A DNA stretch of 64,000 bases, taken from NCBI GenBank assembly GCA_013115145.1, contig JAAPAO010000100.1, positions 14,364 to 78,363 of the forward strand, given 5' to 3'. Position numbers and translations under genes: made by a program. The first letter of the stretch is position 1. The number at the start of each line of letters is the position of its first letter. This document shows, in pieces, positions 8,317 through 62,100 of the stretch. The stretch comes from Perkinsus chesapeaki ATCC PRA-425 (lineage: Eukaryota > Protista > Perkinsozoa). The notes under the pieces are model-generated. The model ran no database searches and was not told the DNA's origin. It saw only the letters and a list, made by a program, of their open reading frames with translations.

Positions 8317-8830
8317 TTTGAAGCTCTAATTTGGCCACTGTCTGACTGCGGGTAATGAAGAAGCCTATGAATACATGAACCATTTGGGCTGTAATAGTGA
8401 AAGAAGTGTAGAGTACAGTTGATACTTAATCATAATATTTTATGACTCATATCACCAATTATCATAGTTCTTGGCCCGAAAGCAAACGCTCGCAGTGTAG
8501 ATCGAACAGAGAGATTCTCGCACGCAAGTGGCATGGAACCCAAATGCTTCAGGCTGAAACCTTCAGCGTCACACGACCTCTCGACGTCCTGAGCATGGAC
8601 AGCGGTCTAGCACAAAAAGAGACTTTACGGAGTTGAGGAGCAATTCAAAGTCAGATTTTGAACAGGCTACTAACACCATTATACTTTATAGAAAATGTTA
8701 TCCATTGTAATCGTATAGCTAAACCGAGCATTACAAGTTGTAATGTCTGGCTGTAATTTACAACTGCATAACGTGTACAGCTGGAAAAATGCGAGGCTTC
8801 CGGAGATGCAGGGGCATGACACTGGTCAGG
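7935..8830 (+). repeat. Duplicated segment, left arm copy 1 (EamA 3' end plus flank)
   Basis: Aligns by eye to about 17445-18020 and 18411-18650. Confidence 0.9.
8730..8764. mobile_element. hAT-type excision footprint, variant (8-mer ATTACAAC)
   Basis: ATTACAA GTTGTAATG tctggc TGTAAT TTACAAC; identical at 18550-18584. Confidence 0.7.
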
Positions 8831-8889
8831 GGGCATATGCCCTCCTGGTTCTATGCCCTCCTGATTCTACTCAAGCGGTACCGACTGCA

Positions 8890-9720
8890 TCACCAAATTG
8901 GTATCCGTGAGGTTGGTTAGCAACCCCTCAGCTCTACCGCTTTCATCGAGATGGTCTCTAGCGAAGGAGCTCCGAAAGTTGTATTATCGGTTAGAGGATC
9001 ATGCTTCACATCCTCTAGTAGAGGACATCTACCTGCAAGCAGATCCTTTCAAGATGCTGCATCTTAGATGCAACATCGTGCTATTTGCACGGTGCAGGCC
9101 TTATGTCATCCTAACGACCCAGCATAACGAGGCTGGTAAGAACGAGGTCATAAGGAGTTTGGAGCTCTACTCCGAGCATCAGCTATCGAAGACAAGGCCT
9201 CAGACCCTCGGTCGCTGAACAACGCTAAGAGATGGATCAGTATGGCCGCCATACTATGGCGGCCTTCACTATAAATTGCCTACCGTACCCTGATGCAGAT
9301 GATCCATCACAAATAACGATTCACTATACCCATAGCCTATGGAACCCATAGTATGGGCCATATGTATGCTGCAGAGCCCCTAACGGTATGGCGAAAGCCG
9401 TACCTTCGGTGATGATGCTAACGCAGTACAATAGGCGGGAGAGTGGTTAGGGAGCGGACTCCTTATTGAACACCTCCCAGCCGACTTGGCTGTCGTACGC
9501 CAAACCTTCTCTGGTGAACGGTCACTCTCACTGCGAGCACTACAAGATTTCCAAGATGAAGCCACAACCTATGGCTTCATTGAATAGCCTGTGGCCCACA
9601 GGATCCGAGATACGGCGCCGCTGATGCCTACTATGACGCTGGACGAAGAAGAGGCAGCTGTCGGATCCAGCAGTCTAGGGGAGTGTGCCGAGTGTCGAGA
9701 TTTTCGTCGAGGAAACAATG
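8890..9720 (+). pseudogene. Coding-like remnant, unidentified
   Basis: Protein-like stretches (LRKLYYRLEDHASHPLVEDIYLQADPF; AGEWLGSGLLIEHLPADLAVVRQTF) broken by in-frame TAG stops and a +14 footprint. Confidence 0.3.
9240..9261. mobile_element. Perfect 7+8+7 excision footprint (GTATGGCG)
   Basis: GTATGGC CGCCATAC TATGGCG. Confidence 0.85.
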
Positions 9721-10016
9721 ATTCTTGATAGTATCAGGCTGTTACTTTTCATTCAGATGGCAGGTCGGCCAGAGCAGAGTACATTGCAACGGCTTTAATG
9801 GCTGGTGTGGCGCAACTCAGTGCTCCCGCACTTGTACTACTTTTTAAGGATAGGCGGCATCGAGACCTCTTCTTGAGGTGTCGCAGGAATCCTGCGGCAG
9901 GATCCATTAAACCTGGTAGACCGGTCCGCTAAGTATTGGTATACGTGACGATGGATAATAATAAGATATTCCGGAATTTGATACTTTTGTGCTGTTCTGT
10001 CGCCATTCGTGTATGC

Positions 10017-10038
10017 GTGCAGAATCTGCACTGCAGAT
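10017..10038. mobile_element. Perfect 7+8+7 excision footprint (GTGCAGAT)
   Basis: GTGCAGA ATCTGCAC TGCAGAT. Confidence 0.85.
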
Positions 10039-10282
10039 CACTGTGATACGCCACTAAGATACTTAAGCGCGCTACCGTTTTGTATTACCAGCCTTACAAA
10101 GTTAAGTTACAACTTAGTTACGAATTCATTAACCACAACCATTGTCAATGGTTAATTTTACAAATTCAATGGTCCATTGAATTTGTAAAAATTAAGAACA
10201 CAACTTGTGTTCTTAATCTTGGCACACTGAACCGTCATTCGCTCACAGGATTACAATCATATCTTATATTAATCCACATTTA

Positions 10283-10729
10283 ATGATTTGCTGCTACGCA
10301 CATGTAACTCATTTTCTTCTGGTGATACTAGTAGTATCGCTCATAAATGTGATGGGTAACACAACTTATGGTGCGCTTTGGGACAATCGAGGCACTGGTC
10401 CGAGCTTCACAGTTTTGGTTCGCGATGATGGTGACGTTCATATGTTCATGTCGAATGGACCTTGTTATGTGAGGGCTCAGGGTCACTCTGGGAGCAGATT
10501 CTTTATACGTTGGAAAAGTACTCAAGACAGACTTAATGCCATTAAGGAGTTGAACGACAGGCATATACTCGGATTTGTCATCCATCAAGATGGCTTAACT
10601 ATGATCGATTTCTGCTGTGATCACTGTTGCCAGCTAGATCTAGGCGGTAGATTTTTCCTGGAAGCCTACAGACTCTTCGACCATGCTACTGCCGCTGAAA
10701 TGTACAACAATATGACGTGCAGAGAGTAG
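10283..10729 (+). CDS. 148-aa putative secreted Cys-containing protein, copy 1
   Basis: Intact ORF; hydrophobic N-terminus FLLVILVVSLINV; DFCCDHCC cluster; ORF also open in the duplicate. Confidence 0.65.
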   Translation: MICCYAHVTHFLLVILVVSLINVMGNTTYGALWDNRGTGPSFTVLVRDDGDVHMFMSNGPCYVRAQGHSGSRFFIRWKSTQDRLNAIKELNDRHILGFVIHQDGLTMIDFCCDHCCQLDLGGRFFLEAYRLFDHATAAEMYNNMTCRE

Positions 10730-11337
10730 CTCTTGTGCAGAATAGTCGTGCAGGAATGCCTTGTCCATTTTTCTCGACTCCGTTAGGCAGTATTTTTCTA
10801 CAATATGAAAAGCTTCTTTCACATTCACCCATAGAGGCACTGATCGAGCGTCTTGTGTTAGTCACTGTGAGCGATAGCGAGCGAAACCCACATGCTGTTT
10901 GGAAGCAGCTCAGTGGCATCCGATGACCACGGAGCAAAGCCTCACCGGCCAAGTACAAAGCGACTGGCTCATTACATAGTTTAGCTCATTTCAAAAAATC
11001 TATTCTCCTTGCACGGAGTTTTGCACTTTAGTGAGCATGCCATAAGCCTTGTTATAGGAGGTGGAATATTGCAGCGTGAACGCGTCAGCGGACCTTCAGC
11101 ACCGGAGGAGGCCGACCGCCGGGATCGAATTACGTCACCAAAATCAAAACACAAAAGCTCGGGTTCAAAGAAGGAACATAACTGACTTTAGACAGATGGA
11201 ACCACATGTGATTCATGAAGTTGAGAGCCCATCGCCGATGAGTCGCTGCAATCGTCTTATTTCTGATAACAGGACGTTCTCGTCTAGGCTGGAAATGAGT
11301 AATCGTAGTAACCTATGTGAAGTGACCTTCTACAGCA

Positions 11338-11692
11338 CTAGCGTACTTTTAGGCAGTACTTGTCGGATACAGCTTTCAGTTGTGTAGGATCGTTGATATC
11401 CACCACTGTAGCATTGCAGAAGTCGAACATCGGCATATCTCGGTTCGCACCGAAAGCTCCCCCAACGCTTGTTCGATAGGAAAGGCGGGGAGAAGCCCCT
11501 CGGCATGCGCTACCACTGGAGTCGGCATCCCTGAACGATATTTCGGAAATTATATTTAACCCTCTCGTGGCTACCTACTGTGCGGCACAGCTCTACGCCA
11601 TAGCCGCAGGGCACTATTGACTTCCCTGAGTTCACTTTGAGCTTCGCCTCTCCATTAGCGTTTGGTGTACCGTCGAGAGTGATGTTACGAGC
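11338..11692 (-). pseudogene. Truncated duplicate of the last two MSH4 exons
   Basis: Matches 21162-21521; homology stops abruptly at 11692. Confidence 0.85.
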
Positions 11693-12276
11693 ACTAGATA
11701 TAGGCTAGTAGTTAATGCATCAAACAGTGTTGAACCAACACTGTGGAATTGCGGAGGCGTGACGCGGGCGAGCCCGACGGTGACAAAGGCTGCCTTTGCC
11801 TTTTTGCCTGTGAAAGGCGGCGGGAAGCACATGGACTGTATTCCCGGCAGTAAATAATATGCAACCGCGCTTAGTGCGAGTATTTCGCGATGCTAACTCG
11901 GCCCTCCCTGCGCTTGGGCTACAGGGCTCTGTAAACAAAGGGCCTACCCCCTGTATACGGCTTGGAAGTTACAATTTGTCGTTCATCTGTGAGTTACAGA
12001 CTGCGACCCTCGAGTGGCATTAGGAAACCTACCTACATCTTGCTTAATCTGAGCAGGTGTTGGCATTTGAGGGACCCCTCGTTATGAAACGGGATGATCA
12101 ACAGGCTCAGTCACCGTTCCTCACTTAACCTGGTTCTGCGCAGGTTTACGAGCATGTTATTGACTGCTTTGGTTCTAATGACTTTCATCCACGCTATCGT
12201 GCCCAGCTACCTTCTAATGCTAGTGATGATGCTGCCAGAACGAGTTCATAGCCTTACTTACGGTGGCCCACCGTAG

Positions 12277-12428
12277 GTGTTGAAAGTGAAAGTGGTGAAA
12301 ATTATTTGTGCCGACGCATGTGTTGAAAACAATCCGCATGTGTTAGTAAGAACCACAGATGTGTTGAAAATGTTATGTGTTGCCAGATACTGGTGTTGAA
12401 ATTGTTCACAAAAAACAAAAATTGGTGG
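12277..12428 (+). repeat. Cluster of GTGTTGAAA motifs
   Basis: Exact copies at 12277, 12320, 12361 and 12393, with degenerate copies between and after. Confidence 0.8.
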
Positions 12429-26129: not shown

Positions 26130-28673
26130 TCACATTATCAACACCAGGCTGGAATATTCTGCCTGTAGTGTCCCAATTCCACCACAGTCCTGATACCTCC
26201 TCCATGATGGCCGTACAGACAGTCTTTGGTATCTTGTAGGAAGAAGTAGTACAATAGAACGCCGGAAAAATATGGGTGCTTTACTTTTACTAATATCACG
26301 TATGGTACTTTGAAGTGAATCATAAGCATGAAGATGCACCCAAGCGCGAACTGCTGTAGCCAAGACATGTTCGCAAATCGATGAAGCCCTAGAAGTTGAA
26401 GTGCTGCAGCACTCTCTGAATGAACAAAGGTCACATGGGTGTCTTTGCCGCAGACTGTTCTCGGTTTCCTCTCGAAAATTCTCCATCTCCTCGACACACC
26501 TGACCACATATATTCTGGTCCACCGGTTTGAAGACTTACTCCTGAACTCTGCGCTGGCTCATCCTATGTTGAATAGTTCGAGCACACTCTTTTGCCTACT
26601 TGAATCACTTCAGGCATCTCGGGTACCTCTACAGTACCGCCATGTCCACCTCTTCGGTCGTACGGAGTGCCCCAGTCTCTTTTAGATAATCAAACCTTTT
26701 GAGTTCCTCGAATACCTTATGAAATACAGCTTAACGATGATGAGCTAACGATCAGTGAGCTACAATAGGATCTGTTATATCTAAACCGAACCTTTCCTTC
26801 ACCTCTTTGCAGACCGAATCATCAACCTTATCAATATCGGATAACAGGAATGGCTGAAGTGAGCAAAACAAGAGTCAACATCCGAATCCTTGGTTTGTCG
26901 TTTGCTAGCCATGTGAGTGCAATAAAAGGCTGATGACATTATCGCCTCACCTTACTATCCTCTTGTGTCTCGCACGACTGCGTATATTGTTTCTCCTTCC
27001 TCCGGAGCTAAAAGCGGTGTCATACGCTCCCTCTCAGCCTCAGCTGGAATGTGAACCTTCTTGATATATTCATTCATGGACTTGGCATTCTCTATCTCGC
27101 CATTATTCTGGTAAATATCCCTTAACACAAAAGAACCCGATTATAGAACGCTCACTTTAGCCACTTACCTCAGAAGCTGCGCCTCCTTCAAACGGGCTTC
27201 AACCGCGGTATGAAGTTCTGATACTTCTGTAACCTTTACGTGAAACAGCATCGGAAAATAGAGAAAAAGAACAGTGCAAGGGGTTCTCAATTTCAGCTAT
27301 GAAAAGTTTTCATTGAAAACGCTTATAACTGCGATCATATCAATCATATATATCGTATATGGCAACTCTCAGCGAAAGGTTTTCGGACTATCTCGGTCCA
27401 GAGAGAGCAGTTCAAGTATTGCTTACGGTCTCCAGCGGTACAGAAACACTTTCATTTATTTGTACATCCTCATCTGAAGTAAGAAGGGTTCCCCGGTCTG
27501 AAATATCTCGCTCTACCCCATTTCGAGGTCGACAGAACTAGGCTCGGCTCTTACTGCACCATCCCGAGTATGTCTTCTTTTCATTTCTTCGTTGATTCAA
27601 GCGCTCGGAGCGCAGCTCCCTCAGCAGCGCCGACACCTCCTGAGAAGAGAGTGGCTCCGATCCAGCCCTTGCAGCCCACTGAGTTATCAGGTTCTATCTC
27701 TTGTGCCTTCGACAGGTCCCTGATAGCACTCTCAACCTCCTCAGCCCCACTTGAGGGTGGTAAGATTAGACACTTTGCTCGTCTGATAGAGCAGTGCTCT
27801 AATAACAGTGTACCCCTCGACGACTGCGCCACCTATATAGAGCCTTCACGTTGCACTTGTCTAGCTCCAACACAACATCGCATGTCCGGCGGGCCTCAGG
27901 GAGCATGTCAGTGCCTACTTCAACTGCACTAGCAGGAGGTAAGCCACATTTGAACATACCCAGCTTCATCTGGCACATAGCGATGTTGCTGTAGCATTGA
28001 ACTCTCAGGTCTTTAATCAGTGACTGCTCTTCTTCACCTACTCCTACACTCTCACGGGAATCAAAGAAGCTTGTCACTCTCGCCAATATCAGATATAATT
28101 TCGATGTAGTCGTCATTCAGACCTTCACTGCGCCAGTTCGGGTTTAGTATCCGAGCATAGTAGAAGAGGCCAGCAGCCCTGGCGTATCTGAGGTACCCAG
28201 TCTAGTGTCTATCGTAGGCCTTAAGAGCTCACTGGTTCATGGCAAGGTGATAATCTCCTTTCCTGAAGTATTCCGTTCCTTCAGTCTTCATCCTGCATCA
28301 CACCCACGTCAACTGCCATTTATCCACTATTGGCTCACCTTCTGGCCACCATTAACCTTTTCTTATACGGTAGCGCCCGGAGCTCTTCAAAGATTTCTCC
28401 CTCGTTTTCAATGATACTATGTATTCTATTATCTGATGGTCAGCGCCATTTCATTGTCTTTCACTGCTGACCCGACCTGGTTGCTCTTGCCCCATGAACG
28501 CAGTTTGTTGGAGTAGCACCGGCCAGGATTCGAACCTGTGCTCACTTCCACCCTGCTAGTGCTCGGTTTCTCCTGACCTCTTCCGCCTCGCGCTGGATTG
28601 TGCTCCCTTTATTCTGGCGGCTTCGGCCACAATCTTTCCGAACGAGGTTTCTTCCATCTCGAAAGATCTTCAT
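26130..28673 (-). CDS. TPR-repeat co-chaperone-like protein with coiled-coil C-terminus, multi-exon
   Basis: KTEGTEYFRKGDYHLAMNQ|YARAAG; LRVQCYSNIAMCQMKLG; EARRTCDVVLELDKCNVKALYR|RAKCL; AIRDLSKAQEIEPDNS. Ends approximate. Confidence 0.7.
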
Positions 28674-28786: not shown

Positions 28787-31122
28787 TCAATCAACAGCAA
28801 CTACCGACGGAGGAACGAAATTCGTTCCCACAACGTTCACTTGTATATTGCAGTAAAGTATATGCGGAAAGCGATGAAGGAGGGAAGGAAGACCGAGTCA
28901 TGCCTTTGTGGGTGGTAGAATTAAAGCACCCTTCTCATCAGACAGATCTTGCTGGTAATCCAGCCATTGAACTGCACAGGCATCCAGTGACTTATGCTTC
29001 ACATCAGCTGGTAGGGGTAAGGCGACAACTGAGGAGACGGATTCGACGCCAAGCCAAGAGGAAGATGCCTCCTACCTGTACAAACCGCGAAGAGGCTGGC
29101 CAGGAGCACTGAGAAGGGCCATGTCCGGATGTGATTCCCGGGAAGTTGCTCGTGCATCATATCGTCACTAACGCGCCCCAAGGCTTCGAATGCCAGCGGG
29201 ACCTGGCAGATCACGAGTCACCTAAGGCGGAGTTCTGCCAGTGTCGTCCTACCACTGCGGCTCCGATCCTGCCCCAACTGACACAGAAACCCGAACCTGT
29301 AGTGCGGCAAAACGCAGGGTAAACCTGAAGGAGGCTTGAACAAGGCGAGCTACTGTGATGGTTTTACGTGAGGAATGTAGATGTAGACTGTACTGAGGAA
29401 GGGCTGGCTCAATAGGTTGTAGAGGAAGGCCAGCAGAAGACCGATGACGGGCGTCGCGAGGTCCAGAGTTATCATGCTGAGACTCTAAAGGACAAAGCAT
29501 CTCCCAGCGCAGAGAATGGTGAGGGCTCACTAGTAGCGCCGAGACGAATGCAGAGATGACGATGACCCCTCTTAAGCCAATGGGGAAGTTATCGATGACA
29601 ACGAGGCAAGACAAGGCATCACCGATGACCCCTGCTATGGTAACGAGATATAGCGACAGGGCCGGGCTAGGGCCACCAGCAGCATCCCAACCTGAGGAGA
29701 TGTAAGACAGGAACATCTCAGACAGGGGTACCTCGCTCGGCCATCTGGCGAAGGGCGATAGGCAGCATGTACGAGACGCCAACAAAGGCAAAGTTGCCAG
29801 TGAAGGTAAGGAAGCATAACGCTGCAGTGACCCAGCCGGTACCTGGCAAGGACCTTCGACAACAGGGCTACCGTAGAACTCACGGTCAGCAAATATGCCT
29901 GATAGTCGGCCACCAAAGGAACGGTTATCCTCGTCTATAGGTATGTCAGCAAGCATTATTGCCGTCTGGAAGGAAAATGGTCTTGGCGGAGAAGCGGCGA
30001 GCCGACTCACCTCATCGAGACGGGCTAGGTTCTCTGAAGTACCATTGCCTCTGGCCATGTCCTTCAATAGGGTCACTAGATCATCCATCCGCTGATGACA
30101 TAACAGGTAGTACGGTGATTCCCGCAGCAGGCAACTGCAAGAGATGGTAAGACGGCGAGGATTCCAAAGCATTCGGACATGGCAAATGGTAGACATGCTG
30201 TGGCCGGTATGATAGAAAGTCCGCTAACCCAGCGCCAGTTGTTGCCATGTAGCCTCAGGTCGGGCATCAGCCACCAGAGCAATGTCTGAAGGAGGCAGGC
30301 AATTCACAGGTATAACAGAAGACAAGGAAACTTACAGTAACGAGGAGCTGCCCCGCGGAGAACATGCTCAGGATGAACGCCACGACCAGGTTGCGCTTGG
30401 TCGAAGGGGTGCACTCTAATAGTAGAGCAAGCGTGCTGGGGGTCACCACACCTGACAAGGAGAGATGGAGCTGGTAGTAGTAGGAGGTGGGGGTTTACCA
30501 TAGGCAAGCCCGACAAAGATCCTTGAGATAACCAAAGTATCGACTGAGTTGGCGAATGCTGATAATACCCCTGCCAGTACCATAACGATGTAACTAAGAG
30601 GGGGTATTGACAAGACAATTTAAGGAAGGAGTGGTACGATATCAGTATAGCAGGCCTTCTGCCTAGACCGTCGGCCAGTTGACCAGCGATGAGGCTACCT
30701 AGCAGTACCCCTACAAAGGGCACGGATACCTGAGCACATACGGCCTGAGACGGCCGAGAATCGGAGGAAATGGCGGACCAAGAAGCCCCTGATCCAATTA
30801 GAGAAATGCCACTCTTCTTGAAGTGCCTGGAGGATACTCGACATCAGCACTACTTCAGCACCGTCCTGCATTTGCCTGATGTCCGACGATGGCATAACAA
30901 AGCCCCGAGGGTATGTAGTGCTCACATTCCGCTAACTGCTATCATCATCTTCCAGTGGGACCACCCGAACCCGACTTCATCAACCCAATAGTTCAACCGT
31001 TGAGGCATCATCACTGACGGGTAGCTTTGATTCGATTTCCGAGTTGGGTACGAGCCAGTGCCGCCATCGTGGTCCGAGAGGGCAGCAGGCTCGGTGCGGT
31101 ATAGGTCCCATGAGTCCGCCAT
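28787..31122 (-). CDS. MFS transporter (SV2/sugar-porter-like), multi-exon
   Basis: VDEVGFGWSHWKMM; DGAEVVLMS; motif A GQLADGLGRRPAIL; LLLECTPSTKR; WRWV; LRESPYYL. The 3' end is uncertain. Confidence 0.8.
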
Positions 31123-36400: not shown

Positions 36401-37750
36401 ATGAAGACCCTTCCTGAAGTGCCCTCCTCCCCCTCTCCTTGTCGAAGGTACTTCATAGCCTTCACAACGTCTCTAATCGCTAGCTACCTTTATCTGTACT
36501 TCACCGGACCTGCTCTCGGCCCAGAATTGGTACCGTGGCCACGGTCGTTTATTACTGGACTTGACATGTGGAAATCTAGTACGGCAGCAGCTACCCCCTT
36601 GTGCTCTAATACTTCGGAGTTCATTCTTAGTGATGATGAAGTGAACAAGTTTGAAGGTGCGTATGGCAGGCCCTATGTTATCGACCTTGGTTTCGCGCAC
36701 GGTCTCGGCCACAAGCTGGAGCTGCAAATGCTTGCAATGGTTGCCGGTCTTCGGGGGCAAGGCATGTTTTCCGGTGCATTATGGACCACTACGAATGGGA
36801 GCGGTGACCACAGTGATATGATGTCGGCTGCACCTCTCCTTGGCCAGCTATGGGGTGGCAATATTTCGGACGAGGCATCGCTTCGGTTGAAAGGCGCTGT
36901 AAGGATATCACCGATAGATGGAGGCTCCTGTCCCCGAAGAAATCCTGGTCAGCAAATCCAGAGTGAAGACAGCAGCATCAGGGGCATTACACTTGATGAG
37001 ATGGCCGACTATTTAAAGGAAGGCCCGTTGGCCATTGTTTGCCCATGGTTCGATAAACGTGCGGGAGAATTTCCCTCCACAGCTGAGACCCTGCTGGTGC
37101 GACACTGGCTCCGCTCGCGCATTGTCAAAGTGGGCAGAGGGCTCACCTTTTTCGAATCTGCTAAGCGGGAGCTTCTCGTAGCCATTCATATAAGGCGCGG
37201 CGACCTTCTTGTTAGACAGCAGCATCGCATGACTCGGAACCGCTTCTTTGCCAACACAGCAGCGCATGTTCTCAGTGAACTAGCATCCAACAGCTCCGCA
37301 CAGGTTGTGGTGGTCAGCGAGACATGGAAGGAAGGAGGTCATGAGTGCAGCCTTCAGAGGAAGCTCTGCAACCACTTGGGCCAGTCTGTAGATTTCGAGG
37401 ACTCCCTCCGGAAGCAGATAGCCGCTCTTGGCAAGGAGTACGGCAACTGGCGAGTAAAGGTCAAACTGGATGCGAACACAGCACGTTCCTTCATCACTCT
37501 CGTAGCGGCTGATATAGCTGTCCTATCGAGCAGTGGCTATAGTGCATGGGCCGGCCTGCTAAGCACCGGTATCACCATTTACCCTTACAACGCCAAGTCC
37601 CAGAGTGTCATGCGCAGGATGCAGACCGATGCTATTTCTTCTATCCCAGTTAATTCCTCTGAGGCGTGGGACGGTGATGCTCTCGTGCGTGAATGGTCTT
37701 GGTATCGGAAATGCCCGGCGAGATTGCAAATTCGAGAGGCAATTATTTGA
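36401..37750 (+). CDS. Type II membrane glycosyltransferase, GT11/alpha-1,2-fucosyltransferase-like, intronless
   Basis: N-terminal TM anchor; GLGHKL (GLGNQ-like); VAIHIRRGDL GDP-fucose-binding motif; VVVVSE; ADIAVLSSSGYSAWAGLLS. Confidence 0.75.
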   Translation: MKTLPEVPSSPSPCRRYFIAFTTSLIASYLYLYFTGPALGPELVPWPRSFITGLDMWKSSTAAATPLCSNTSEFILSDDEVNKFEGAYGRPYVIDLGFAHGLGHKLELQMLAMVAGLRGQGMFSGALWTTTNGSGDHSDMMSAAPLLGQLWGGNISDEASLRLKGAVRISPIDGGSCPRRNPGQQIQSEDSSIRGITLDEMADYLKEGPLAIVCPWFDKRAGEFPSTAETLLVRHWLRSRIVKVGRGLTFFESAKRELLVAIHIRRGDLLVRQQHRMTRNRFFANTAAHVLSELASNSSAQVVVVSETWKEGGHECSLQRKLCNHLGQSVDFEDSLRKQIAALGKEYGNWRVKVKLDANTARSFITLVAADIAVLSSSGYSAWAGLLSTGITIYPYNAKSQSVMRRMQTDAISSIPVNSSEAWDGDALVREWSWYRKCPARLQIREAII

Positions 37751-38164
37751 TGAGACATGTATGATTTGGCATGCTCCCATCATTGACTTTCGTTGACAAA
37801 TCTAAGACTTGCGTGTCGAGTGATAACGCCGCAGCACGATGTACAATCGCGTTATGTACTTGCATGTCACATAGTGATAGTGGGTGTGTAGTAAACACTG
37901 TGTACGGTTACCATACTATTGTAAGCTTTCCCGTCTGGGCTCTACTGAATAGAGTCTACTTGGAAAGCACCCGGCTGTGTGATAGATTCTCCAGAGATAC
38001 ATTTCGTAGAGATAGATTCTCCTCTGGCACCATCTTAACTCGAAGCTCAGAAGAATTGGGCATTGATTATTATATAAGTGATAATGTTAATAATATGAGC
38101 GGGAGTAAAACAGCTGATAAGATATTTGTAAATGTGTGCATCTTGTTCGCTTCTTCCGTTCCGT

Positions 38165-38186
38165 GTATCTACTAGATACTATCTAG
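38165..38186. mobile_element. Perfect 7+8+7 excision footprint (GTATCTAG)
   Basis: GTATCTA CTAGATAC TATCTAG. Confidence 0.82.
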
Positions 38187-38373: not shown

Positions 38374-38395
38374 GTAGCTATTAGCTACTAGCTGA
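38374..38395. mobile_element. 7+8+7 footprint, 1 mismatch (GTAGCTAA)
   Basis: GTAGCTA TTAGCTAC TAGCTgA. Confidence 0.68.
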
Positions 38396-38869
38396 GGGGC
38401 GCGCAACTTGCGTGACGCATGTACATATATTAGTTGGTTGAATAGGTCAATCACAAATATTTCTAGTATGACAGCAGACAATGAAAAAAGCTACTAGACG
38501 TACGGTAGTCAAGTAAAGCACACAAGAGAGATACTAGCGCACGAGATGAACAAACTGCTGAGAGCGATGAATCAATTGAGCGAGCGAGATATTTCATACG
38601 ATATGTAGCGCGCATACACTACTGTACAGTATTAGTTACTCTGTCTCACAGTCTGCTACTAACAGACTGATTTGTGACTAATTCACGGTATTATGTAATT
38701 AGGCTAGTATTATCAGCCTATAGGCTACAGCCTATCAGCCTATTTACTTAGGCTACAGTAATTACTCGCAGTATTATCACAACTAATTATTGGCTACTAG
38801 TACATATCCCTCAGTAAATTTTCAATTATGGGGAAGTCAGCAGTCTCACGAGTCGCAAGATTATAGGTA

Positions 38870-38891
38870 ATCTTGAGTCAAGATTCTTGAC
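38870..38891. mobile_element. Perfect 7+8+7 excision footprint (ATCTTGAC)
   Basis: ATCTTGA GTCAAGAT TCTTGAC. Confidence 0.85.
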
Positions 38892-40061
38892 CCAAAACCG
38901 CTTGGCGAAAAGGCTTATGTGCTCCTTATCGTGCGAATATCCACGTGGCCCATTCAGAGTGTGCTTGCCAACGAGTGCAGCTATCTCATGCAGTTTGCAC
39001 GACACCTCCTGTCCCTTAGACCATGATGTGTACGTACCATTGACTGTCCGCAACCTAAAGCGGTGGTTTTTTTCTGTATGGCGTGCGGGGGAGGTCGAGT
39101 GCGAGTGCGTTTTGCCCCATGAACCCCTTCAACTGTCGCGTCCACGAGTGATAGCGGATAAGCCCGCGCGTACGTGTGCTTTCGCCATAGGCATAAATTA
39201 CGAGGAGGGATGAGGTTCCATACTAAATATGGGCAAGTCTTGCCCTAGCGGTGTGCTGGCTGATACTCGCTTTCAGCTCGGTGATTGTCGCGCTCCTTGA
39301 CCGTCGCGCGACAGTTGTTCATCTTGCTGGGGTTGGTGGGTGCTGCTATTCAATTGCGAGGGGGTCCGCGCACCCCACGTTGTGGGGGCCCCGCCCGGAC
39401 CCTTCTGAGTTAGGATCGAACCTGCGACCTGCGCGAAAATTGCGGTATGGCGGATTGCGCCTTCCACCGAGTGTGCCCGGTTTAAACTCTGTATCCGCTT
39501 CCCTCATTGGAAAGCAATCCCAGTGAAACACCGGGAACGCACAATATCAGTTCCCATAATGGGACCTGGTTCGTGGCGCTTTTCATGCGAATTAGCAGAG
39601 TGCGCACGCGTACGGTGCGAGTCGCAATAGAAAATTCATTGAAATATTTTATCCGTACTGTTGGTGAGAAGTTAGCTTCACCTACGCTTTATTACTTGTC
39701 TCCGATGCCTCGAGCTATTGTACCTTGAAGCTGTATTGCCCGCCTGCTTATCGTTACTTTGTATAAAGCCTAGAGATTGTATTAGTAATACAGTATTACC
39801 AGAGTCGCCCGTTGTCTACCGGCAGTATCAATCACGACTATGCCCACAGAATGCATCGCGCAACATTACCCCGTTATTCCAAACATCAGACTCGGACTGT
39901 GATTTATCAGTGAAGAGTTAGACTTTCGATTTCTTTCTGAATAAATAGTCTAAATTGGCGCTAAGATCAGCATTCGCATACAGCCCCTGGAGCGACCTAA
40001 CGAGCATCTGAGCAGCTTAGCGCGCCCTTTTAGTTCTTTCTTCGTTTCCCTCGTGGCTTAG

Positions 40062-42392: not shown

Positions 42393-43134
42393 GAATCTCG
42401 TCATGGTATTTATAGTCCGACCTTATTCGTCATTCTCAATTTTCGGTCTGGCCCTTACCGGGTTATAAGCCTGTATGAAATTCGTGGCGGTAATCAGTAT
42501 TGTATCTGGTGGTATTCGAGCTCCGTCCTACGTTGGGTTGGATGCTCGAATCGCTGTCAATCGGCATGAGTAAACGGTTTATAACCGGCCTGGTTAAACA
42601 ACTAAGCTTATTTGATCGTCGCATCTCTTTGATTAGCCCTTTCTACGGAAGTCAATGCGATGCGTTAAGTCCAGGGGATCGGAACAACGGCAGTCGTATA
42701 TTGTCGACATTACGGTAGAATCGATCTGTTGTACGAGGAGACTTCCTGTCGTCCGGTTCCTCCAAACAGGAGACTTCGATATATGATCGGGGTGCTGTGT
42801 GGAGGCTTCTTGTACGATCCTATTCACGACCAATCCCTCAGCTCACAGCCCTATCTTCTCCGTGTTGTGGGCGAACAGACAAGGAAAAGGGAGCTCGAGA
42901 ACATCAACAAGTCTCGCTCGGCCAACCACGCTGTATCTACAGTTCGATCTAAATATAGGGACTATATCTCCGGGATATCCAGCGACCCAAGCCGCTGCAT
43001 CACTCCGAGGAATACACTGGCTTGGATTATTCTCGTCTGCACGCGAAAGTAGGATCTCCGTCATGGTTTGCTATGATCACACTTGGATCTGTAACCCTTG
43101 CCATGGCGATGCTTGCAGCCTCTGATTTAGGAGG

Positions 43135-43156
43135 CTTGCCAGTGGCAAGTGGCCAC
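43135..43156. mobile_element. 7+8+7 footprint, 1 mismatch (CTTGCCAC)
   Basis: CTTGCCA GTGGCAAG TgGCCAC. Confidence 0.72.
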
Positions 43157-43351
43157 TGGAAGATTTTTCTTAACTGCGCAAGGCTTAAATAATCGAATTT
43201 CGAGTTTGACTGTCACAAAGTAGAGTACGCATTGCGCCTTGAGAAAGACCGAGTCCGTGGCGATTACAGCGAGTAAGAACTATACCACCTCCTGAAGGTG
43301 ACCTTCATGGACATCTGGTAGATATGAACGATACTTGGTCGAGAGTGAACT

Positions 43352-43505
43352 CCGCTCTTGGCCAGGAGTACGGCGACTGGCGACAGTGCAGTGGCTGATA
43401 TAGCTTTTCTATCGAGCAGTGGCTATAGTGCATGCGCCGGCCTGCTAAGCTCCGGTACCAGTGGTACCGTACCACCATTTACCCTTAAAACGTCCTAGAG
43501 TGTCA
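43352..43505 (+). pseudogene. Degraded fragment of the fucosyltransferase-like gene
   Basis: Aligns to 37422-37610 with an internal deletion of about 50 nt and a +14 footprint at 43454. Confidence 0.85.
43454..43475. mobile_element. Perfect 7+8+7 footprint (GGTACCAC) with empty paralogous site
   Basis: GGTACCA GTGGTACC GTACCAC; the intact gene has a single GGTATCAC at 37568-37575. Confidence 0.9.
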
Positions 43506-44867
43506 AGCACCTGTTTGTAGCCTACGTGCGCGCTAACTCTCACGCATACAAATCGTACCTATCGTCTAAACAGAGGAGTAACAGAACAGACCAATCTAAC
43601 AGTCTGTTAGATTAGTAGAAGAGCTCTTGAAGAGAAAAAATAATTTCAACTAGTGGAGATGTCGGTAATTCTGATATCGTCACCGCAACGTAAGAGCAAT
43701 GTAATAATACGAGGCAATGAACATATAACAGTCAACAAACAGTCTTCATTCTGAGGAAGCCTTCTCACGACTCTAAAGGGTATTGATATAGCGAAAACTG
43801 CGCGCGTGCTTCCACCATGTGCGTTAACTGACATGAAGGACGAGTTTTCATATCCTTACTTAACTAACCACGTCGGATTTACCTCTGCATCGCCCCCTTA
43901 ATCAAGAACACACAATGTCAGCTCCTATAATGGGACCAACGAAGACCGCAAATGGAGCGTCTTTTACAGTGCAACAGCGACCGAGGGTGCTCCTCGATAG
44001 CGACTCCGAACATCCTCACTTCATGGGGCCCCTGTCCGGACTGGACCTGGCAAATAGCTCCGGGGTGACTGAGCATCAAATCAAGCTGTCGAAAGCGCCG
44101 ACTCGACACCGTAATGAGCAGCCTCAGATCTACGTTTGCGTGCCCACAACCAGCGGCTGGGGCTAGCATCATGTAACATGATACATGTTTCGGTATTCGA
44201 CCACTCAAGTCCGGAGGAGACAGCATGGTTTACTCATTTATTGCACGAAGTTCGCACAACTGACCAGGAGGTTGGAGCTCCAACAGTACGCAATGTCCCG
44301 ACACTGATCAGCATATGAACGTCAGACTGGTAAACTCGCTAGTTACGGACCATACACTGCAGGTGAGACCATTCTGCTGCTAGAGCAAGAATCCACGGTC
44401 TGCTGTGGCGTGTGCGTGTTGACACTGCATGGCGCCAAAATAGTGGTATCTTGGCGCTTTTTGTGAATCGCCTCCTGGTTACCTCCGCCTGGAATAATTT
44501 TACAACGACATATGGTAGCTACTACTGTATTGCGTAAACTCGAGGAGATTTTCACGGTGATTTCTTAAGTCGACACGTAAGTCCCCTCTTATCAGCGGTC
44601 GACGGTTCCCTACGCGTACAGAGTGGAGGCGCCCTCTCGGGCCCCCGAGCGCCCGAAGGCGCCACGGCCTAGCCTAGAGGTTTTGGCATAGCAGGAAGCC
44701 GGGCATTTAGTTCATCAGGCACACGCGTAGACGAGGATCTTACACTCATCTGTCCTCTTCTCGATCATCTGCAGGAAAATCCATCCATGTTCCGGAGCAG
44801 CATGATTGACGACCTAGCGAGTTCCTCAGAATCCTGTTTTGCTCTCAGCTTTCTTATTATTTCATTC

Positions 44868-47198
44868 ATGACTCACTTGAAACGTATATCATGGCTAATC
44901 TTGTATGTAGCCTCGATGATAAGAGAAATCACGTGTGCGGGAGCTCCGCGCGCGGAGCTAGGATCTGTTGGAGCTACCCAGGAGTTGGTTCGCTACTCGC
45001 AAGTGAAGGGAAGGCCCTACGTGGTGTCTTACGATTCCCGGGCCTTCCTCATTGATAATAACCGAACCTTGCTTCTTGGAGGCTCAGTTCACTACCCTAG
45101 GCTTGCCCCAGAAGAATGGGGTCCAATATTGAAGAACATGGCTCTTGATGGGTTGAACCATGTCCAAATTTATGTATTCTGGAACGTCCATGAGCCGAAT
45201 CCTCCCAAGTATGATGCAGCCTCTAAGACTTATGCTCATTCCTATGATCTTAGTGGAAGAGCTGATTTGGTTAAGTTCATCAAATTGGCGGGCGAGAATG
45301 ATTTATTTGTTAATGTTCGTATTGGACCTTATGTCTGTGCCGAGTTTACCTTTGGTGGCATCCCTGTCTGGACCAAGGACATCCCTGGCATGTGTTACAG
45401 GTCTATTTGTGGATGGCATTCTGGGTCGCCTGAAATCTGCGAGCCTTGGAAGACTGGTACCACAGCTGGATGCGATCCCTGGAGGCAGCAGATGGCCGAC
45501 TTTACTCTCTTCATTGTCGATCTTATCAATAAGAATGACCTTAGTGCTGAGCAAGGTGGCCCTGTGATTATGGCACAGATCGAAAATGAGTATAACAATC
45601 ACGAGCCTGTTGGAAATGCTTATATCGCGTGGTGTGGTGATTTGGCTACGAATAGCACCTTAAATGTCCCTTGGGTTATGTGCAACGGCATGTCTGCTAA
45701 AGGCACGCTAAATGTGTGCAATGCGTACGACTGCGAGGGTTACGCCAAGCAACATGATAAGGAGTGGCCTGATCAGCCCCTTGGGTGGACCGAGGACGAA
45801 GGCTGGTTTGTCACTTGGGATCCTGCAAATACACACATATATGACAGATCTCCGGAAGAGATGGCTTATGTTGTGGCGAAGTGGGTAGCTATTGGTGGTA
45901 GTCATCATAACTATTATATGTGGTATGGTGGTAATCATATTGGTCAATGGGGTGCTGCTTCTCTCACTAACGCTTATGCTCAAGGGGTCAATGTACTTCC
46001 AAGCGGTCTTCCTCATGAACCCAAGAAGTCTCATTTGGCAAAACTTCATAAAGTGCTTGGGGCACTTAACGGAGAACTCATGAGCGTTGCGGATCGTAAA
46101 ACAATCAAACCACAGAGTCTCGATAAGGGTATACAACTATATCAATGGACACCAAATCTTGGATTCCTACATCGTCCTACGTGTTCTGATCAGCCGGCAG
46201 TTGTTACTCTAAATGGAACCAGCTATACGGTATCATGTCAAGAAGTGCTGATAATCAATCCCCAGTCGGGAACGGTTTATTACGCGAGTGCCCAAGTCCC
46301 CGCTGGAGGATCCATAGTAAACAATGTTATTGCGACCCTTGATAGTGTGAGCTCCGCGCCAGAGAAGTTCTCAAGGGGCATGGGAACTCGTAACAGCTCC
46401 TATCCTATCGACCAACTCAGTATCGCTGGACTCGATACTGACTATGTCTTATACACGACATCTTTTATCAGTCCATCTGACAATTATGTGGATCTGAAGA
46501 TAGGCTCAGGCGGGTCACAAGCCTTTTATATATCGTTTGATGGTGGCAAATCGTTTCCCGCGTCCACGATGAACATCATTAAGGGTACCTATCAGTGGAC
46601 GGCGACAGCAAGTCTGAAAGGAGTGAAGGTTGGCCAGAGGTATGCTTTGCACATTCTCTCTGAAAGCCTTGGTATTGAGAACTATGGAAACATGAAGGCA
46701 TGCCTAGATAAAGGCATAATGAGCGACGTAACGGTTGGTGGGAAGTCGATATATAAAGGTGAATGGACCATGGTTAAAGGTCTCGATGGTGAGGTCTCAA
46801 ATGGGACCGAACCCTTTGATACAGCAGGTACGGCTGTCGGTGCCACTAGTGCCAACGTTCCCACATGGTTCTACTCCGAGTTTGACTTGCCTCCGGCTAA
46901 ACCTTCTGATTGGGGCGTGAGGTCTGTATCTTTGAGGATTCCTAAGGGGCTCCCTAACAATGCCGGTGGCCATATCTGGTTGAACGGTAAGAATATTGGA
47001 AGATGGCGAGCGACCTTCCAGCCGAGGACCGGAGATTATGTCCAACCCGAGTACAGACTGCCAGCTGATGCTTTATTTATTGGTAAGAACAAGTTGGCCG
47101 TCTTTAGCGCCACTGGAGACTGGGTATCATCTGCTATACGACCAGCAGAGATAATTGAGAGCTTCTACGTTCCGGTTAGGCATGTTGAACATCATTAA
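44868..47198 (+). CDS. Secreted GH35 beta-galactosidase, paralog 2, intronless
   Basis: Same motifs as paralog 1. Start placed at MTHLKRISWLILYVAS for the signal peptide; the ORF is open from 44787. Confidence 0.93.
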   Translation: MTHLKRISWLILYVASMIREITCAGAPRAELGSVGATQELVRYSQVKGRPYVVSYDSRAFLIDNNRTLLLGGSVHYPRLAPEEWGPILKNMALDGLNHVQIYVFWNVHEPNPPKYDAASKTYAHSYDLSGRADLVKFIKLAGENDLFVNVRIGPYVCAEFTFGGIPVWTKDIPGMCYRSICGWHSGSPEICEPWKTGTTAGCDPWRQQMADFTLFIVDLINKNDLSAEQGGPVIMAQIENEYNNHEPVGNAYIAWCGDLATNSTLNVPWVMCNGMSAKGTLNVCNAYDCEGYAKQHDKEWPDQPLGWTEDEGWFVTWDPANTHIYDRSPEEMAYVVAKWVAIGGSHHNYYMWYGGNHIGQWGAASLTNAYAQGVNVLPSGLPHEPKKSHLAKLHKVLGALNGELMSVADRKTIKPQSLDKGIQLYQWTPNLGFLHRPTCSDQPAVVTLNGTSYTVSCQEVLIINPQSGTVYYASAQVPAGGSIVNNVIATLDSVSSAPEKFSRGMGTRNSSYPIDQLSIAGLDTDYVLYTTSFISPSDNYVDLKIGSGGSQAFYISFDGGKSFPASTMNIIKGTYQWTATASLKGVKVGQRYALHILSESLGIENYGNMKACLDKGIMSDVTVGGKSIYKGEWTMVKGLDGEVSNGTEPFDTAGTAVGATSANVPTWFYSEFDLPPAKPSDWGVRSVSLRIPKGLPNNAGGHIWLNGKNIGRWRATFQPRTGDYVQPEYRLPADALFIGKNKLAVFSATGDWVSSAIRPAEIIESFYVPVRHVEHH

Positions 47199-47244: not shown

Positions 47245-47266
47245 ATTGTAACTTACAATGTGTAAG
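47245..47266. mobile_element. 7+8+7 footprint (ATTGTAAG) in the GH35-2 3' flank
   Basis: ATTGTAA CTTACAAT gTGTAAG; the paralogous flank near 42439 is exactly 14 nt shorter. Confidence 0.8.
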
Positions 47267-47289: not shown

Positions 47290-47311
47290 GCCTGAAATAC
47301 AGGCTCTGTAT
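47290..47311. mobile_element. 7+8+7 footprint (GCCTGTAT) in the GH35-2 3' flank
   Basis: GCCTGaA ATACAGGC tCTGTAT; single GCCTGTAT at 42469-42476 in the paralog. Confidence 0.82.
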
Positions 47312-48840: not shown

Positions 48841-49328
48841 CTTTAATGAAACAGCCGACACACAGGCGGAGCTAACATGATATGTAACGCGTGCCAGTTA
48901 TACCAGATCATGGCACGAATGTCAGTTTATGGCTACACGGTATCACTGATTACTAATCAGGGAATTGCGGCTCAGTTGTATTTGGTTATGTGTCTGCGTG
49001 CCATGTAAGTTGTGTGGAGTATCGGTCAGAGGAGGAGAAGGCAAGCTCCACATAGACGGCAACAGAAGTTGTAGTTTGGAATAATAGGATTATTTGCCGA
49101 TATAATTTTGTGTGAATCTCTGCTCTCACCCGGATGTCGGCGTAGTGCCTAACCGATTGACCTTTCGTGGTCGGCTTCCCAGTATCTTCGATTGGTCTTG
49201 TGGGAGTCTGCCTCGGGCGAAGGAAAGCCTTCGACTCTGGGGCTGAGAGTGGGCGCCACAATATAGCATCCTATCATTGACAACACTACGTTACACGATG
49301 TAACTCGACCGCCAAGACAGCCTGTATA

Positions 49329-49350
49329 CAAGCTCGGAGCTTGAAGCTCC
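49329..49350. mobile_element. Perfect 7+8+7 excision footprint (CAAGCTCC)
   Basis: CAAGCTC GGAGCTTG AAGCTCC. Confidence 0.85.
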
Positions 49351-50063: not shown

Positions 50064-50085
50064 TCGTCGGATCGACGACGTCGAT
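50064..50085. mobile_element. 7+8+7 footprint, 1 mismatch (TCGTCGAT)
   Basis: TCGTCGg ATCGACGA CGTCGAT. Confidence 0.7.
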
Positions 50086-58757: not shown

Positions 58758-59139
58758 CTGACTGAGGTCTTTTGTTCTCCGACTGTCATATTCCACTTGA
58801 ACTATTCTCCATGTCACTAATCCACTTTTACGATTAGGGGGCTGTTAGCAAATATAATGTAAAAGACTCAGAACACAAGGCTGCACCTACCGCACGAACG
58901 CGCACAAAGTAGGCTCAGCCGAAGGCGGCTGCCGATCAAAAAGGCATAATATCATACCATATGAAGTGTGGCTATCATTGCGATCACTAATGCCCCACTT
59001 GTAACTATGAACGGTGTCCTCGCTGAACTCTGAAAACATATATTGGCAAACTGGATTATAACCGTAGAACATACTTTGCTGCTATAACGAGTCGAATTTA
59101 ACAGAGGATCCACCGCCTGTCCAACCACAACCTGGAAAG

Positions 59140-62100
59140 TCAGAATAGACGATTGACGTTAGTGATTATCCTTGAACATACGCTAGGATCCATTTTGGTG
59201 ATTTCATCTTCCTCGGTCATCTTCACCTCTCCAGTGTCTCCCTCCTCCGCATTATGGGCTTTTACTGCCACTTCAACCGGTGTTGTTGGCAGTTTAGTCG
59301 GTATCGTCGCAGTCGTCGAGGTAGAGAAGTGTACTGTTATGGTCTTCTGTGTTGTAGCGCTAGTGGGTGGTGGATAAGTCGTCTTCTCAGTCTCTGGCGT
59401 TGGCTGGGGATTCACCACTCCACTCAGTGATGATGCTTCATCTGACATAGGAAGCGGTCTGCTTATAATCGGGCCGGGCATACTTGACAACAAGATATCA
59501 ACGCTACCGATGGCCGGATTAAGTGGGCACGCGAAAGTCGAGGACCCTCCAACTTTACCTGAGTTTTTGCTAGCTGGAGTAGCAGGAGGCGTCGGCGTTA
59601 CCGAAGATACGCCACGAGACATTGCTGGGGAAATCATTCAAGTTTGAATATCACATAATCCGGTTCACCTTCTCTGAGGGGCTCGGGTGGCACGCGCACA
59701 ATCATCTCTTGTGGTATCATAAACCTCGATGCACATGCGTTGGTCAGCGCCTTGAGGAATGAAGCCCCCTTCGGAACTTGGGATTTCAAAAAATCGATGC
59801 ATGTCATTTCGCTGCGGACGGAAGTATTGGTGTATGTAATTCTAAGGGAGAATCGATGCCCAAATATGATCAACAATAACGAACTCACTCAGGCTCGCCA
59901 GTCGCTTCGTTCTTGCATCGAAAAGCCCCTATCCAGTCCCCGACTGGGGGTCTGTAGAGTCCCATGTACAGTTGTGGTGGGTTGCCGTACATGATGCCAC
60001 ATAGATCGGGTGATAGAGATACCATCTGAAGAAGGCAGCCAATAGAATCGGCAGAGGGGGTTATCGAGGACGGACTGTGGTCAGCAAGCTCATACAATGA
60101 GAATGTTAAGGAGCCCCGCGAGAAATTGTATACAGAACAATCCGAGCGTCAGAGCAAAATACCCTCAACAATGCAATCGCTTCCTCACCGAGTCTTCCAC
60201 ATCAGAAGTGCGCTTCTCTGGGGCGGAGTCCTTCACGAGAGGGGTACCTGATTGCAGGGAAGGTGTAGGCAAACTCGATACATGCTTTTTGCAAGCTTGC
60301 CTCGTGGACTTGAGAGATACTCAACCTCTCCATTTAGCACTGTCGCTTGGCTATAATCACAAACCATCCTAATTGCCTGTTCGGCAGTGGAGCTGCTCGG
60401 CAAAGGGAAGCCTCCAATAACTTCTCGGCAAGTAGCATCAGGATCACTCGTGACGAAGGTGTAATGGTCCCTAAGCTCTCGAACGTGAACATAACGTTGA
60501 ACAGCTTGTTTGCCTCACCTGATCATCTGCCTCAATTGGTTATGGCAGTGTCCTGCGAGCTTCCAGCGCCCGGTACCGGTTTTGATTAGCATGAACGTGG
60601 GGGCGTTGGGGTCGCCAGTGTAAATGTCGCACTTGGGCACGCTCTCGGATCCGTATACTCGTATCTGTTAGCAAAAGTAAATAGAACCGGAAAACAGATG
60701 AGCCTGGTCCGACAGTCTTACCGCTTCTCTCCATGGGGTAGTGCGGTAACGTTCGACAGTGACGCGAAGTGACCTGAGACTCAAACTGTTAGCTTTGTGC
60801 TGTAGAGGGGTCGAGGCTCCTCACCTAGCTTGCAGAAGACACATGCCTGCAATGAACGATCTGAGGGAGGAAAACGTCATCACTAGAAGGTGGCTTGAGG
60901 AATAAATAAATGGGGCCTGTGAAAAAACTACTTCCAGATCGTGGCTAAACTTCAGTCCTCGGCCGCGTAACAGAGCCCAGTTGCACAACTCAAAACAGCC
61001 TTGCGGTATAACACTGCAGGCACATGATGCGGCAGCAGCCGAAAGGGGCTAGAGAAGCGATGGCCGAAGGGCGCTCGCTCCGTATATCAGAAGACATACA
61101 AAACAGTCATTATAAGGATGCTGACTATCCCGCTCGAATATTCCTTCGCATTTGACTTCTGAAAGGTGATGTATCAACGTTGTGGCAAATTGCCACTGGC
61201 AATTGACTTACATCTCCAGAATCACTCTGGGCGTAGAAACGAGGTCGCAGCACGCGTTCAATGACACGACGATCATCCGCAGTTATCATACTCCTCGGCT
61301 TGCTCTCCGTCTGACAAGATCAAAGTGACCATAGCTTTACACTAACCAGAAATATGAACCATCTCCGACCACGACAGAGTTTGGAAGGAGTCCGCCGCAC
61401 AGATTTCTCACCGTAGCGATGTGCGACAGCTCATAAAGCTTCGCAATCCCCCCAGGAGGTGGTTGTTCTTGCGACTTATCAAGACTCGTGACGAGTTCTT
61501 CTTCATTAACAGCTTTTATTGGTAGTCTATCCTCCTTGTCCTCTGCATCACCGATTCCGATCCCTCCGCCACTAGCTCCGCTATGTCCAGCCACAGACCC
61601 ACTCGTTTCAAGAGGGTCTTTTGTGGGACCTAAGGCCAATTTTACGTAAGGCTACTATTGTGGCGCCCACTCTTATCGATGTGCTTTGGGCTTGGTGCGA
61701 GTGTGGAGTAAGAATCCCTGTAAACCAGCGGGTTTAACTCGAAGGCTAAGGAACGAGAGAGGTGCTGTTGAGAAACTATACCTCCCGCATACCTTCCCCC
61801 AATGGCTTTGGTGGCTCGTTCACTCTATATTTGACAAGAATTGTATTCAGAGATGTGCATAGCTCCTTCATGGTATCAGCAGCTGAGAGCTGCCCAACTC
61901 CTGGAGTGGAGCGTAAGTACTTCTCGCAATCTCCAGACAACCCTTTTCCGAGATGTACGAAGTGAGTCCTGATACGAAAACCCGACTGACTGGTCCACAA
62001 GCGCCACATGGAATCCATTCTACTTCGTTTCTCGTGTGTCTGCGTCCGTACATTTAAGCCCCATCGCCCACTGACCAGCGTTAGGTGCGAAAACACCGAG

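Follow-up and report, generated by a model that had tools for sequence, protein, structure and literature searches.

The excision footprints that DNA transposons leave are as a rule short and heterogeneous and cannot be seen unless a sister genome is available, so that past cut-and-paste activity can almost never be counted. A 64,000-nt stretch of the genome of Perkinsus chesapeaki ATCC PRA-425 (contig JAAPAO010000100.1, positions 14,364 to 78,363; hereafter the window) raises the question of whether such a count can be read from a single sequence. Perkinsus is a shellfish parasite, and the window carries many 22-bp units, hereafter scars, which differ in sequence and obey one rule of inverted repetition of an 8-mer. 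What made them? We found that the pattern is real and stronger than an earlier note on this DNA had stated. The scars are probably donor-site scars of a hAT-type cut-and-paste element, left when hairpins were opened far from their tips and tracts derived from the target site duplication (TSD) annealed.

The rule is that, for an 8-mer X, the unit reads X[1-7] + rc(X) + X[2-8], where rc is the reverse complement. Mismatches were counted at the 14 constrained positions of the 22-mer, and the whole window was scanned. This direct scan found 13 perfect scars, 13 with one mismatch and 12 with two mismatches, 38 in total with up to two mismatches, or about one per 1.7 kb (Table 1). With uniform composition, chance would give about 2e-4, 0.01 and 0.2 of these, respectively, and no perfect match was found in 20 first-order Markov shuffles of the window. 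The nine perfect sites listed in the earlier note are all exact, and four more were added (9051, 9882, 27299 and 39778). Its ten imperfect sites are all present as well, 47290 with two mismatches and the rest with one. The scars have no constant segment; all their bases derive from X, and only the rule is shared.

The length of X is strictly fixed. When the rule was generalised to X[1..k-1] + rc(X) + X[2..k] with k = 3-13, enrichment was found at k = 8 only (13 vs 0 in the shuffles). There were zero matches in the window at k = 6, 7 and 9-13, and k = 3-5 were at background level (at k = 5, 1 observed vs 1.45 expected). Absence of a peak at k = 8 had been set beforehand as a refutation, and what was found over this range is a single sharp peak.

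Internal duplications in the window supply three empty-site comparisons. A fixed difference of 14 bp from empty sites had been predicted, and it is seen at all three unscarred paralogous sites, each scarred copy being exactly 14 bp longer. The intact fucosyltransferase-like gene, for instance, reads ...CCG GTATCACC ATTT... around 37568-37575. Since the unscarred copies hold the 8-mer only once and are shorter by exactly 14 bp, the scar is a 14-bp insertion at one 8-mer, as the model requires.

We rebuilt X for the 38 scars. T occupies position 2 in 22 of them (p=3.6e-5) and A position 7 in 23 (p=5e-6), while G1 and C8 are each found in 15. The inferred target consensus is GTnnnnAC, and the palindromic GTnnnnAC/nTnnnnAn preference is what we take to be the classical target motif of hAT elements such as hobo and Hermes. 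Perfect palindromes with a one-base centre are also abundant in the window (arm 7, 42 observed vs 2.4 expected; arm 8, 16 vs 0.8), the longest having arms of 13, 14 and 17, one case each; in the same scan palindromes without a centre or with a two-base centre were not clearly enriched. In all scars the two one-base centres are the complements of X8 and X1, that is, comp(X8) and comp(X1), and lie 7 nt apart. Such a centre, namely the complement of the terminal TSD base, is exactly what arises from a 1-nt offset in a flank hairpin. In Ac/Ds footprints, palindromes of palindromic (P) nucleotides have at their centre the complement of the base that borders the element; in yeast their arms reach up to 20 nt and about 88% of the joints use microhomology (PMC5873905).

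Products that keep both TSD copies were sought with a spacing scan, which required X1-X7, comp(X8) and then comp(X1) before X2-X8. Enrichment was found at spacing 14 only (18 observed vs 0.6 expected). Spacings 8-13, where classical short hAT footprints would fall, were at background, and the individual matches there misfit the P-tract rule. When the spacing was extended to 120 and palindromic arms of at least 4 were required on either side, three independent unmerged double-palindrome products were found, with P tracts of 9-10 and 9-18 nt. These products show the two hairpin-derived tracts adjacent to each other and document that hairpins were opened at a distance of 9-18 nt from the tip. If the two rc(X) copies of an unmerged product are collapsed into one, the 22-bp scar results. 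The product at 8730-8764 has an identical copy at 18550-18584 and is therefore older than the segmental duplication described below. The recognisable events in the window are at least 38 merged scars, three unmerged products and about nine solitary long odd palindromes; the last may be one-sided outcomes.

Scars cluster in gene-poor stretches, with 21 in 8.5-20 kb and 16 in 37.8-50.1 kb. About 2.6% of the 8.5-20 kb stretch is scar-added DNA. None of the 38 lies inside an open reading frame (ORF) of at least 150 aa, though such ORFs make up 24% of the window (p=3.5e-5).

Table 1. Positions in the window of the 22-bp scars, the unmerged products and the unscarred paralogous sites.
Feature	Positions	Strand	X, TSD or 8-mer	Remarks	Evidence or setting
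Perfect scar	9051..9072	.	AAGATGCA		pattern scan
Perfect scar	9240..9261	.	GTATGGCG		pattern scan
Perfect scar	9882..9903	.	CGCAGGAT	within ~120-bp high-copy repeat	pattern scan and contig depth
Perfect scar	10017..10038	.	GTGCAGAT		pattern scan
Perfect scar	13081..13102	.	TCACTAAT		pattern scan
Perfect scar	19747..19768	.	CTCTCGAC		pattern scan
Perfect scar	27299..27320	.	ATGAAAAC		pattern scan
Perfect scar	38165..38186	.	GTATCTAG		pattern scan
Perfect scar	38870..38891	.	ATCTTGAC		pattern scan
Perfect scar	39778..39799	.	TGTATTAC		pattern scan
Perfect scar	43454..43475	.	GGTACCAC	in fucosyltransferase-like pseudogene	pattern scan
Perfect scar	49329..49350	.	CAAGCTCC		pattern scan
Perfect scar	61182..61203	.	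GTGGCAAT		pattern scan
Scar, 1 mismatch	7058..7079	.			
Scar, 1 mismatch	9011..9032	.			
Scar, 1 mismatch	13536..13557	.			
Scar, 1 mismatch	15479..15500	.			
Scar, 1 mismatch	17082..17103	.			
Scar, 1 mismatch	19261..19282	.			
Scar, 1 mismatch	19341..19362	.		X and flanks as at 19292	
Scar, 1 mismatch	38374..38395	.			
Scar, 1 mismatch	43135..43156	.			
Scar, 1 mismatch	43286..43307	.			
Scar, 1 mismatch	44168..44189	.			
Scar, 1 mismatch	47245..47266	.		in GH35-2 3' flank	
Scar, 1 mismatch	50064..50085	.			
Scar, 2 mismatches	8546..8567	.			
Scar, 2 mismatches	9337..9358	.			
Scar, 2 mismatches	9724..9745	.			
Scar, 2 mismatches	12444..12465	.			
Scar, 2 mismatches	12938..12959	.			
Scar, 2 mismatches	18695..18716	.			
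Scar, 2 mismatches	19292..19313	.			
Scar, 2 mismatches	37884..37905	.		4-nt overlap with scar 37902	
Scar, 2 mismatches	37902..37923	.			
Scar, 2 mismatches	38400..38421	.			
Scar, 2 mismatches	47290..47311	.		in GH35-2 3' flank	
Scar, 2 mismatches	48939..48960	.			
Unmerged double-hairpin product	8730..8764	.	ATTACAAC	X[1-7]+rc(X)+5-nt filler+rc(X) (1 mismatch)+X[2-8]	
Unmerged double-hairpin product	10137..10190	.	ACCATTGA	left tract 9 nt, filler AA, right tract 18 nt	
Unmerged double-hairpin product	15252..15289	.	CCCAAGAC	two odd palindromes (arms 9, 9), filler AG	
Unscarred site for scar 43454	37568..37575	.	GGTATCAC	single 8-mer	intact fucosyltransferase-like paralog
Unscarred site for scar 47245	42439..42446	.	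ATTTTCGG	single 8-mer	GH35-1 3' flank
Unscarred site for scar 47290	42469..42476	.	GCCTGTAT	single 8-mer	GH35-1 3' flank

The scars are not confined to this window. We compared it with a set of 106 kb, mostly gene-dense loci, from assemblies of P. marinus, P. olseni and P. chesapeaki. Perfect scars were found in intergenic DNA of P. chesapeaki (L003:15428), P. marinus (L004:5313) and P. olseni (L005:15745), and a one-mismatch scar in P. marinus (L002:15495). The chance expectation for the set is about 4e-4 perfect matches. The density in these loci is about one scar per 26 kb vs about one per 1.7 kb in the window. Judging from these assemblies, the scar-forming process is genus-wide and far denser in the present window.

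Elements of the hAT superfamily generate 8-bp TSDs and, at excision, hairpins on the flanking DNA that are offset by one nucleotide. The peak at k = 8, the 14 bp gained over the empty sites, the GTnnnnAC preference, the palindromes with a one-base centre, the unmerged products, the spacing of 14, the absence from long ORFs and the presence in read contigs and in other Perkinsus assemblies are our grounds for the hAT-type reading. We propose a scheme in which insertion would duplicate an 8-mer X, preferably GTnnnnAC. At excision the transposase would nick each flank 1 nt in, and the flank 3'-OH would attack the opposite strand. The left cap would then be X[1-7]-comp(X8)-rc(X[1-7]) and the right cap rc(X[2-8])-comp(X1)-X[2-8]. 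A host nuclease would open these hairpins several to many nt off the tip, leaving tails with long P tracts. The tracts would anneal if their lengths sum to at least 9, after which flaps would be trimmed, gaps filled and nicks sealed. All such pairs would converge on X[1-7] + rc(X) + X[2-8], 14 bp longer than the virgin site. In this scheme we infer the identity of the transposase, the nuclease, the joining pathway and the steady rate considered below.

The scheme would account for the stereotypy of the scars. The two P tracts are complementary to each other because both are copied from the same 8-mer. Since any pair of tracts summing to at least 9 gives the identical junction, the +14 product would be an attractor of microhomology-guided joining. 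It had been supposed that both hairpins were opened at least 8 nt off-centre. Such opening is sufficient but not necessary, as tract lengths summing to at least 9 give the identical product.

Transposition of this kind would be conservative, each departure leaving one scar and adding no copy of the element. Neutral DNA would therefore gather scars at a more or less constant pace, and resident elements would remain few. Constant birth with neutral decay predicts approximately equal mismatch classes, and the classes 0, 1 and 2 contain 13, 13 and 12 scars; these counts fit steady formation up to the present, not one ancient burst. It is conceivable, although we doubt it slightly more than we believe it, that Perkinsus genomes hold a near-complete, datable ledger of cut-and-paste jumps in which almost all recognisable excisions end in the same 22-bp product. 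If so, the window would record about one scar per few hundred point substitutions, and extrapolation would give on the order of 10^4 scars genome-wide, exceeding resident elements by orders of magnitude. The hairpin regime in this alveolate lineage would then be unusual, with long-tract opening and microhomology joining as opposed to Artemis-type opening at the tip.

Several points weigh against a hAT-type origin or limit its reach. None of the scar sites was observed with an element still inserted. A strict search of the window (perfect 8-bp TSD, 14-nt terminal inverted repeat (TIR), up to 3 mismatches) returned 0 candidates, and a relaxed one (TSD at least 7/8, TIR at least 10/12, up to 4 kb) returned five with unrelated termini, vs about 3-4 by chance. 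A Pfam scan found a transposase domain in 0 of about 58 window ORFs of at least 100 aa. The earlier note had likewise recognised no intact hAT in the window. Contigs assembled from four public DNA runs (two samples from two studies, which may be one strain) were compared over 8500-14400, and they held no 14-bp indel and no empty or occupied allele at the scars. The shuffle controls are first-order Markov approximations. Donor sites that were restored precisely, or deleted into the TSD, would not be recognised. The earlier claim of one dominant repair outcome thus stands in that merged scars are the commonest recognisable class, and "dominant" applies only among detectable products.

The footprints might belong to another superfamily with 8-bp TSDs (Merlin/IS1595-like, MULE or an undescribed family) instead of hAT, which we consider unlikely. 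Merlin-related ORFs with intact DDE motifs are present in P. marinus and Merlin TSDs are 8-9 bp (PMC8101967), the MULE Muta1 forms flanking-DNA hairpins and TSDs of 8-9 bp (PMC5499845), and the search for a hAT element in the window was negative. However, the length here is strictly 8, with zero matches at k = 9-11, whereas the MULE TSD is typically 9 bp (8-11). A TSD of 8 bp would suit Merlin too, but a 9-bp class is lacking here, and Merlin excision chemistry is not known to involve flank hairpins. The GTnnnnAC/nTnnnnAn target is a hAT signature. A second such signature is the palindrome centre, which equals the complement of the TSD's terminal base (PMC5873905). In addition, Muta1 excision is >90% precise (PMC5499845), and the P. 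marinus Merlin copies have no recognisable TIRs or TSDs (PMC8101967). Transib or RAG-like elements, with a 5-bp TSD and flank hairpins, were rejected by the background level at k = 5. The P element has an 8-bp TSD and staggered cleavage, and element-derived nucleotides remain in its footprints; it was rejected since the scars have no constant sequence and all their bases come from X.

It is very improbable that the scars arose without any transposon, as templated insertions at ordinary breaks or stalled forks. Fold-back (snap-back) priming and polymerase template switching are known makers of short inverted duplications, and an element is present at none of the scar sites, but these processes would spread the lengths, whereas single peaks stand at k = 8 and spacing 14. 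The scar is also symmetric on both sides, its two one-base centres being spaced by exactly 7 nt, the targets carry a specific palindromic base preference, and the unmerged products have two independent hairpin-derived tracts around an 8-bp duplication. The abundance of scars in intergenic DNA near genes, together with the alternative hairpins they can fold into, could suggest selected palindromic motifs, such as protein-binding or RNA-hairpin sites, in place of neutral scars. This is scarcely credible, since the scars are sequence-independent with only the rule conserved, degrade through point mutations, with the classes of 0, 1 and 2 mismatches about equal in size, and are lacking in paralogous copies; one, at 43454, is within a pseudogene. 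An artefact of assembly or sequencing can practically be dismissed. Long-read chimeras can create palindromes, and short-read contigs break at several scars; nevertheless, contigs of the four runs span the scars 9011, 9051, 9240, 9337, 9724, 12444, 12938, 13081 and 13536 without any difference. Moreover, mutated scar copies exist, scars avoid ORFs, and the independently made assemblies of P. marinus, P. olseni and P. chesapeaki contain them as well.

On a hAT-type origin, the chemistry is well known, since experiments have long shown P-nucleotide palindromes at hAT donor sites; what is unusual is how the breaks were repaired and that the record is self-identifying and of genome scale. Hermes and hobo form flank hairpins and 8-bp TSDs at nTnnnnAn targets. 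The scars share with them the 8-bp duplication, the 1-nt offset, seen as the one-base centre, and the GTnnnnAC target. The Hermes and hobo chemistry is described at review level in PMC5499845. In contrast to Hermes and hobo, only the consequences of the chemistry are seen in the window, without transposase, TIRs or a resident copy. At V(D)J coding joints, made by RAG and Artemis, hairpin-capped ends are likewise opened off-centre to give palindromic additions. The P tracts of V(D)J joints are typically 1-4 nt, whereas those in Perkinsus are 9-18 nt. Since V(D)J joining has no TSD, its two tracts are not complementary and cannot merge.

Ac/Ds in plants, S. cerevisiae and C. albicans resembles the Perkinsus case in its P-nucleotide palindromes, their explanation by flank hairpins and the microhomology at the joint (PMC5873905). 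Experimental Ac/Ds footprints are heterogeneous and usually short, with 28 types among 128 events in C. albicans (PMC5873905), whereas in Perkinsus one product, the merged inverted TSD of +14 bp, outnumbers each other recognisable class. Ac/Ds footprints were obtained at reporter loci, and the Perkinsus scars instead are fossils formed in nature throughout the genome. In rice, too, lesions at the donor sites of DNA transposons have become fixed naturally, as seen by comparison of O. sativa with O. glaberrima. There a simple footprint was left in 8/94 excisions, most showed deletions or foreign filler, and a sister genome was needed (PMC4423477), whereas the Perkinsus scars identify themselves in a single genome. 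A full-text literature search found no description of such scars in Perkinsus, nor of a single merged inverted-TSD product dominating any natural genome.

Because the scar is recognisable from one sequence, excision events become countable and relatively datable, and hops can be compared with resident copies. The scars also permit mapping of insertion preference, local clustering included. They read out the parasite's handling of hairpin-capped breaks, which bears on genome-editing outcomes in Perkinsus and on alveolate end-joining pathways. With each event intergenic DNA gains 14 bp of nested palindrome, so that scars contribute measurably to the growth of non-coding sequence and to the amount of cruciform-prone DNA. 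In other genomes, the scar rule could serve as a general test for past hAT activity.

Two large duplications involve scarred DNA. A tandem duplication at 36401-47198 comprises a fucosyltransferase-like gene and a GH35 beta-galactosidase gene, and the GH35 copies are 87% identical. The second fucosyltransferase copy, a pseudogene at ~43.1-44.3 kb, carries four scars (43135, 43286, 43454 and 44168). The spacer between the fucosyltransferase-like and GH35 genes (37698-40159) measures about 2.5 kb and holds 9 scars; its counterpart in the syntenic P. olseni contig (L001:9643-10092) measures about 450 bp and holds none. A segmental duplication (7938-8833 / 17443-18653 and 10228-11695 / 19878-21520) shows 91-97% identity. 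Its central 1.2-1.4 kb is unrelated between the copies, and both cores are scar-dense. Odd palindromes at 8011/17517, 8737/18557 and 10539/20189 are common to both copies and are therefore older than the duplication. A third odd palindrome (10191-10217, arms 13, centre C) adjoins the unmerged product 10137-10190 and lies about 10 bp from the breakpoint of the duplicated segment starting at 10228; it may be a one-sided hairpin product tied to the rearrangement. We examined scar 8546 as an occupied site and rejected it, since the approximately 380 extra bases of its paralog (18027-18411) are a non-homologous replacement without TIRs or TSD. On a smaller scale, the scars 19292 and 19341 have identical X (GTTATGTA) and near-identical flanks and lie 49 bp apart. 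By its sequence, 19292-19362 is a local tandem duplication (~49 bp) that copied a pre-existing scar.

The genes of the window include an EamA transporter gene, a multi-exon MutS homologue, a PRK/uridine-kinase gene, a GT11-like fucosyltransferase gene, two tandem GH35 genes and the genes for an RRM protein and an RCC1/F-box protein. The GH35 beta-galactosidase ORF at 40062-42392 is 72% identical to a P. olseni protein, 55% to a P. chesapeaki protein and 52% to a P. marinus protein. The RCC1/F-box ORF shares 70-71% identity with proteins of P. olseni and P. marinus. The part 28952-42318 is collinear with a P. olseni contig, and the nucleotide identity of their coding regions is about 70%. No RNA gene was found when the window was scanned with Rfam and tRNA models.

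An insertion of 171 nt (20784-20954) is found in one copy of the segmental duplication where the copies are 97% identical, and the paralogous empty site is at 11134-11138. It is flanked by the 5-bp direct repeat GTCAC, starts with GT and ends with AG, and is intron- or introner-like. Both forms are backed by read contigs, with loose ends at 11134 and 11138. Two segments, 9853-9972 (~10x) and 12277-12402 (~4x), have contig depth above their surroundings, and the contigs continue into differing flanks. They are dispersed repeat families, and neither matches an Rfam or tRNA model. The former includes the perfect scar 9882, and the latter has a reiterated GTGTTGAAA-like motif. Toward the end of the window there are a TCGTGG hexamer array (62455-62512) and a GTT trinucleotide array of 75 copies with 90% matches (63772-63996).

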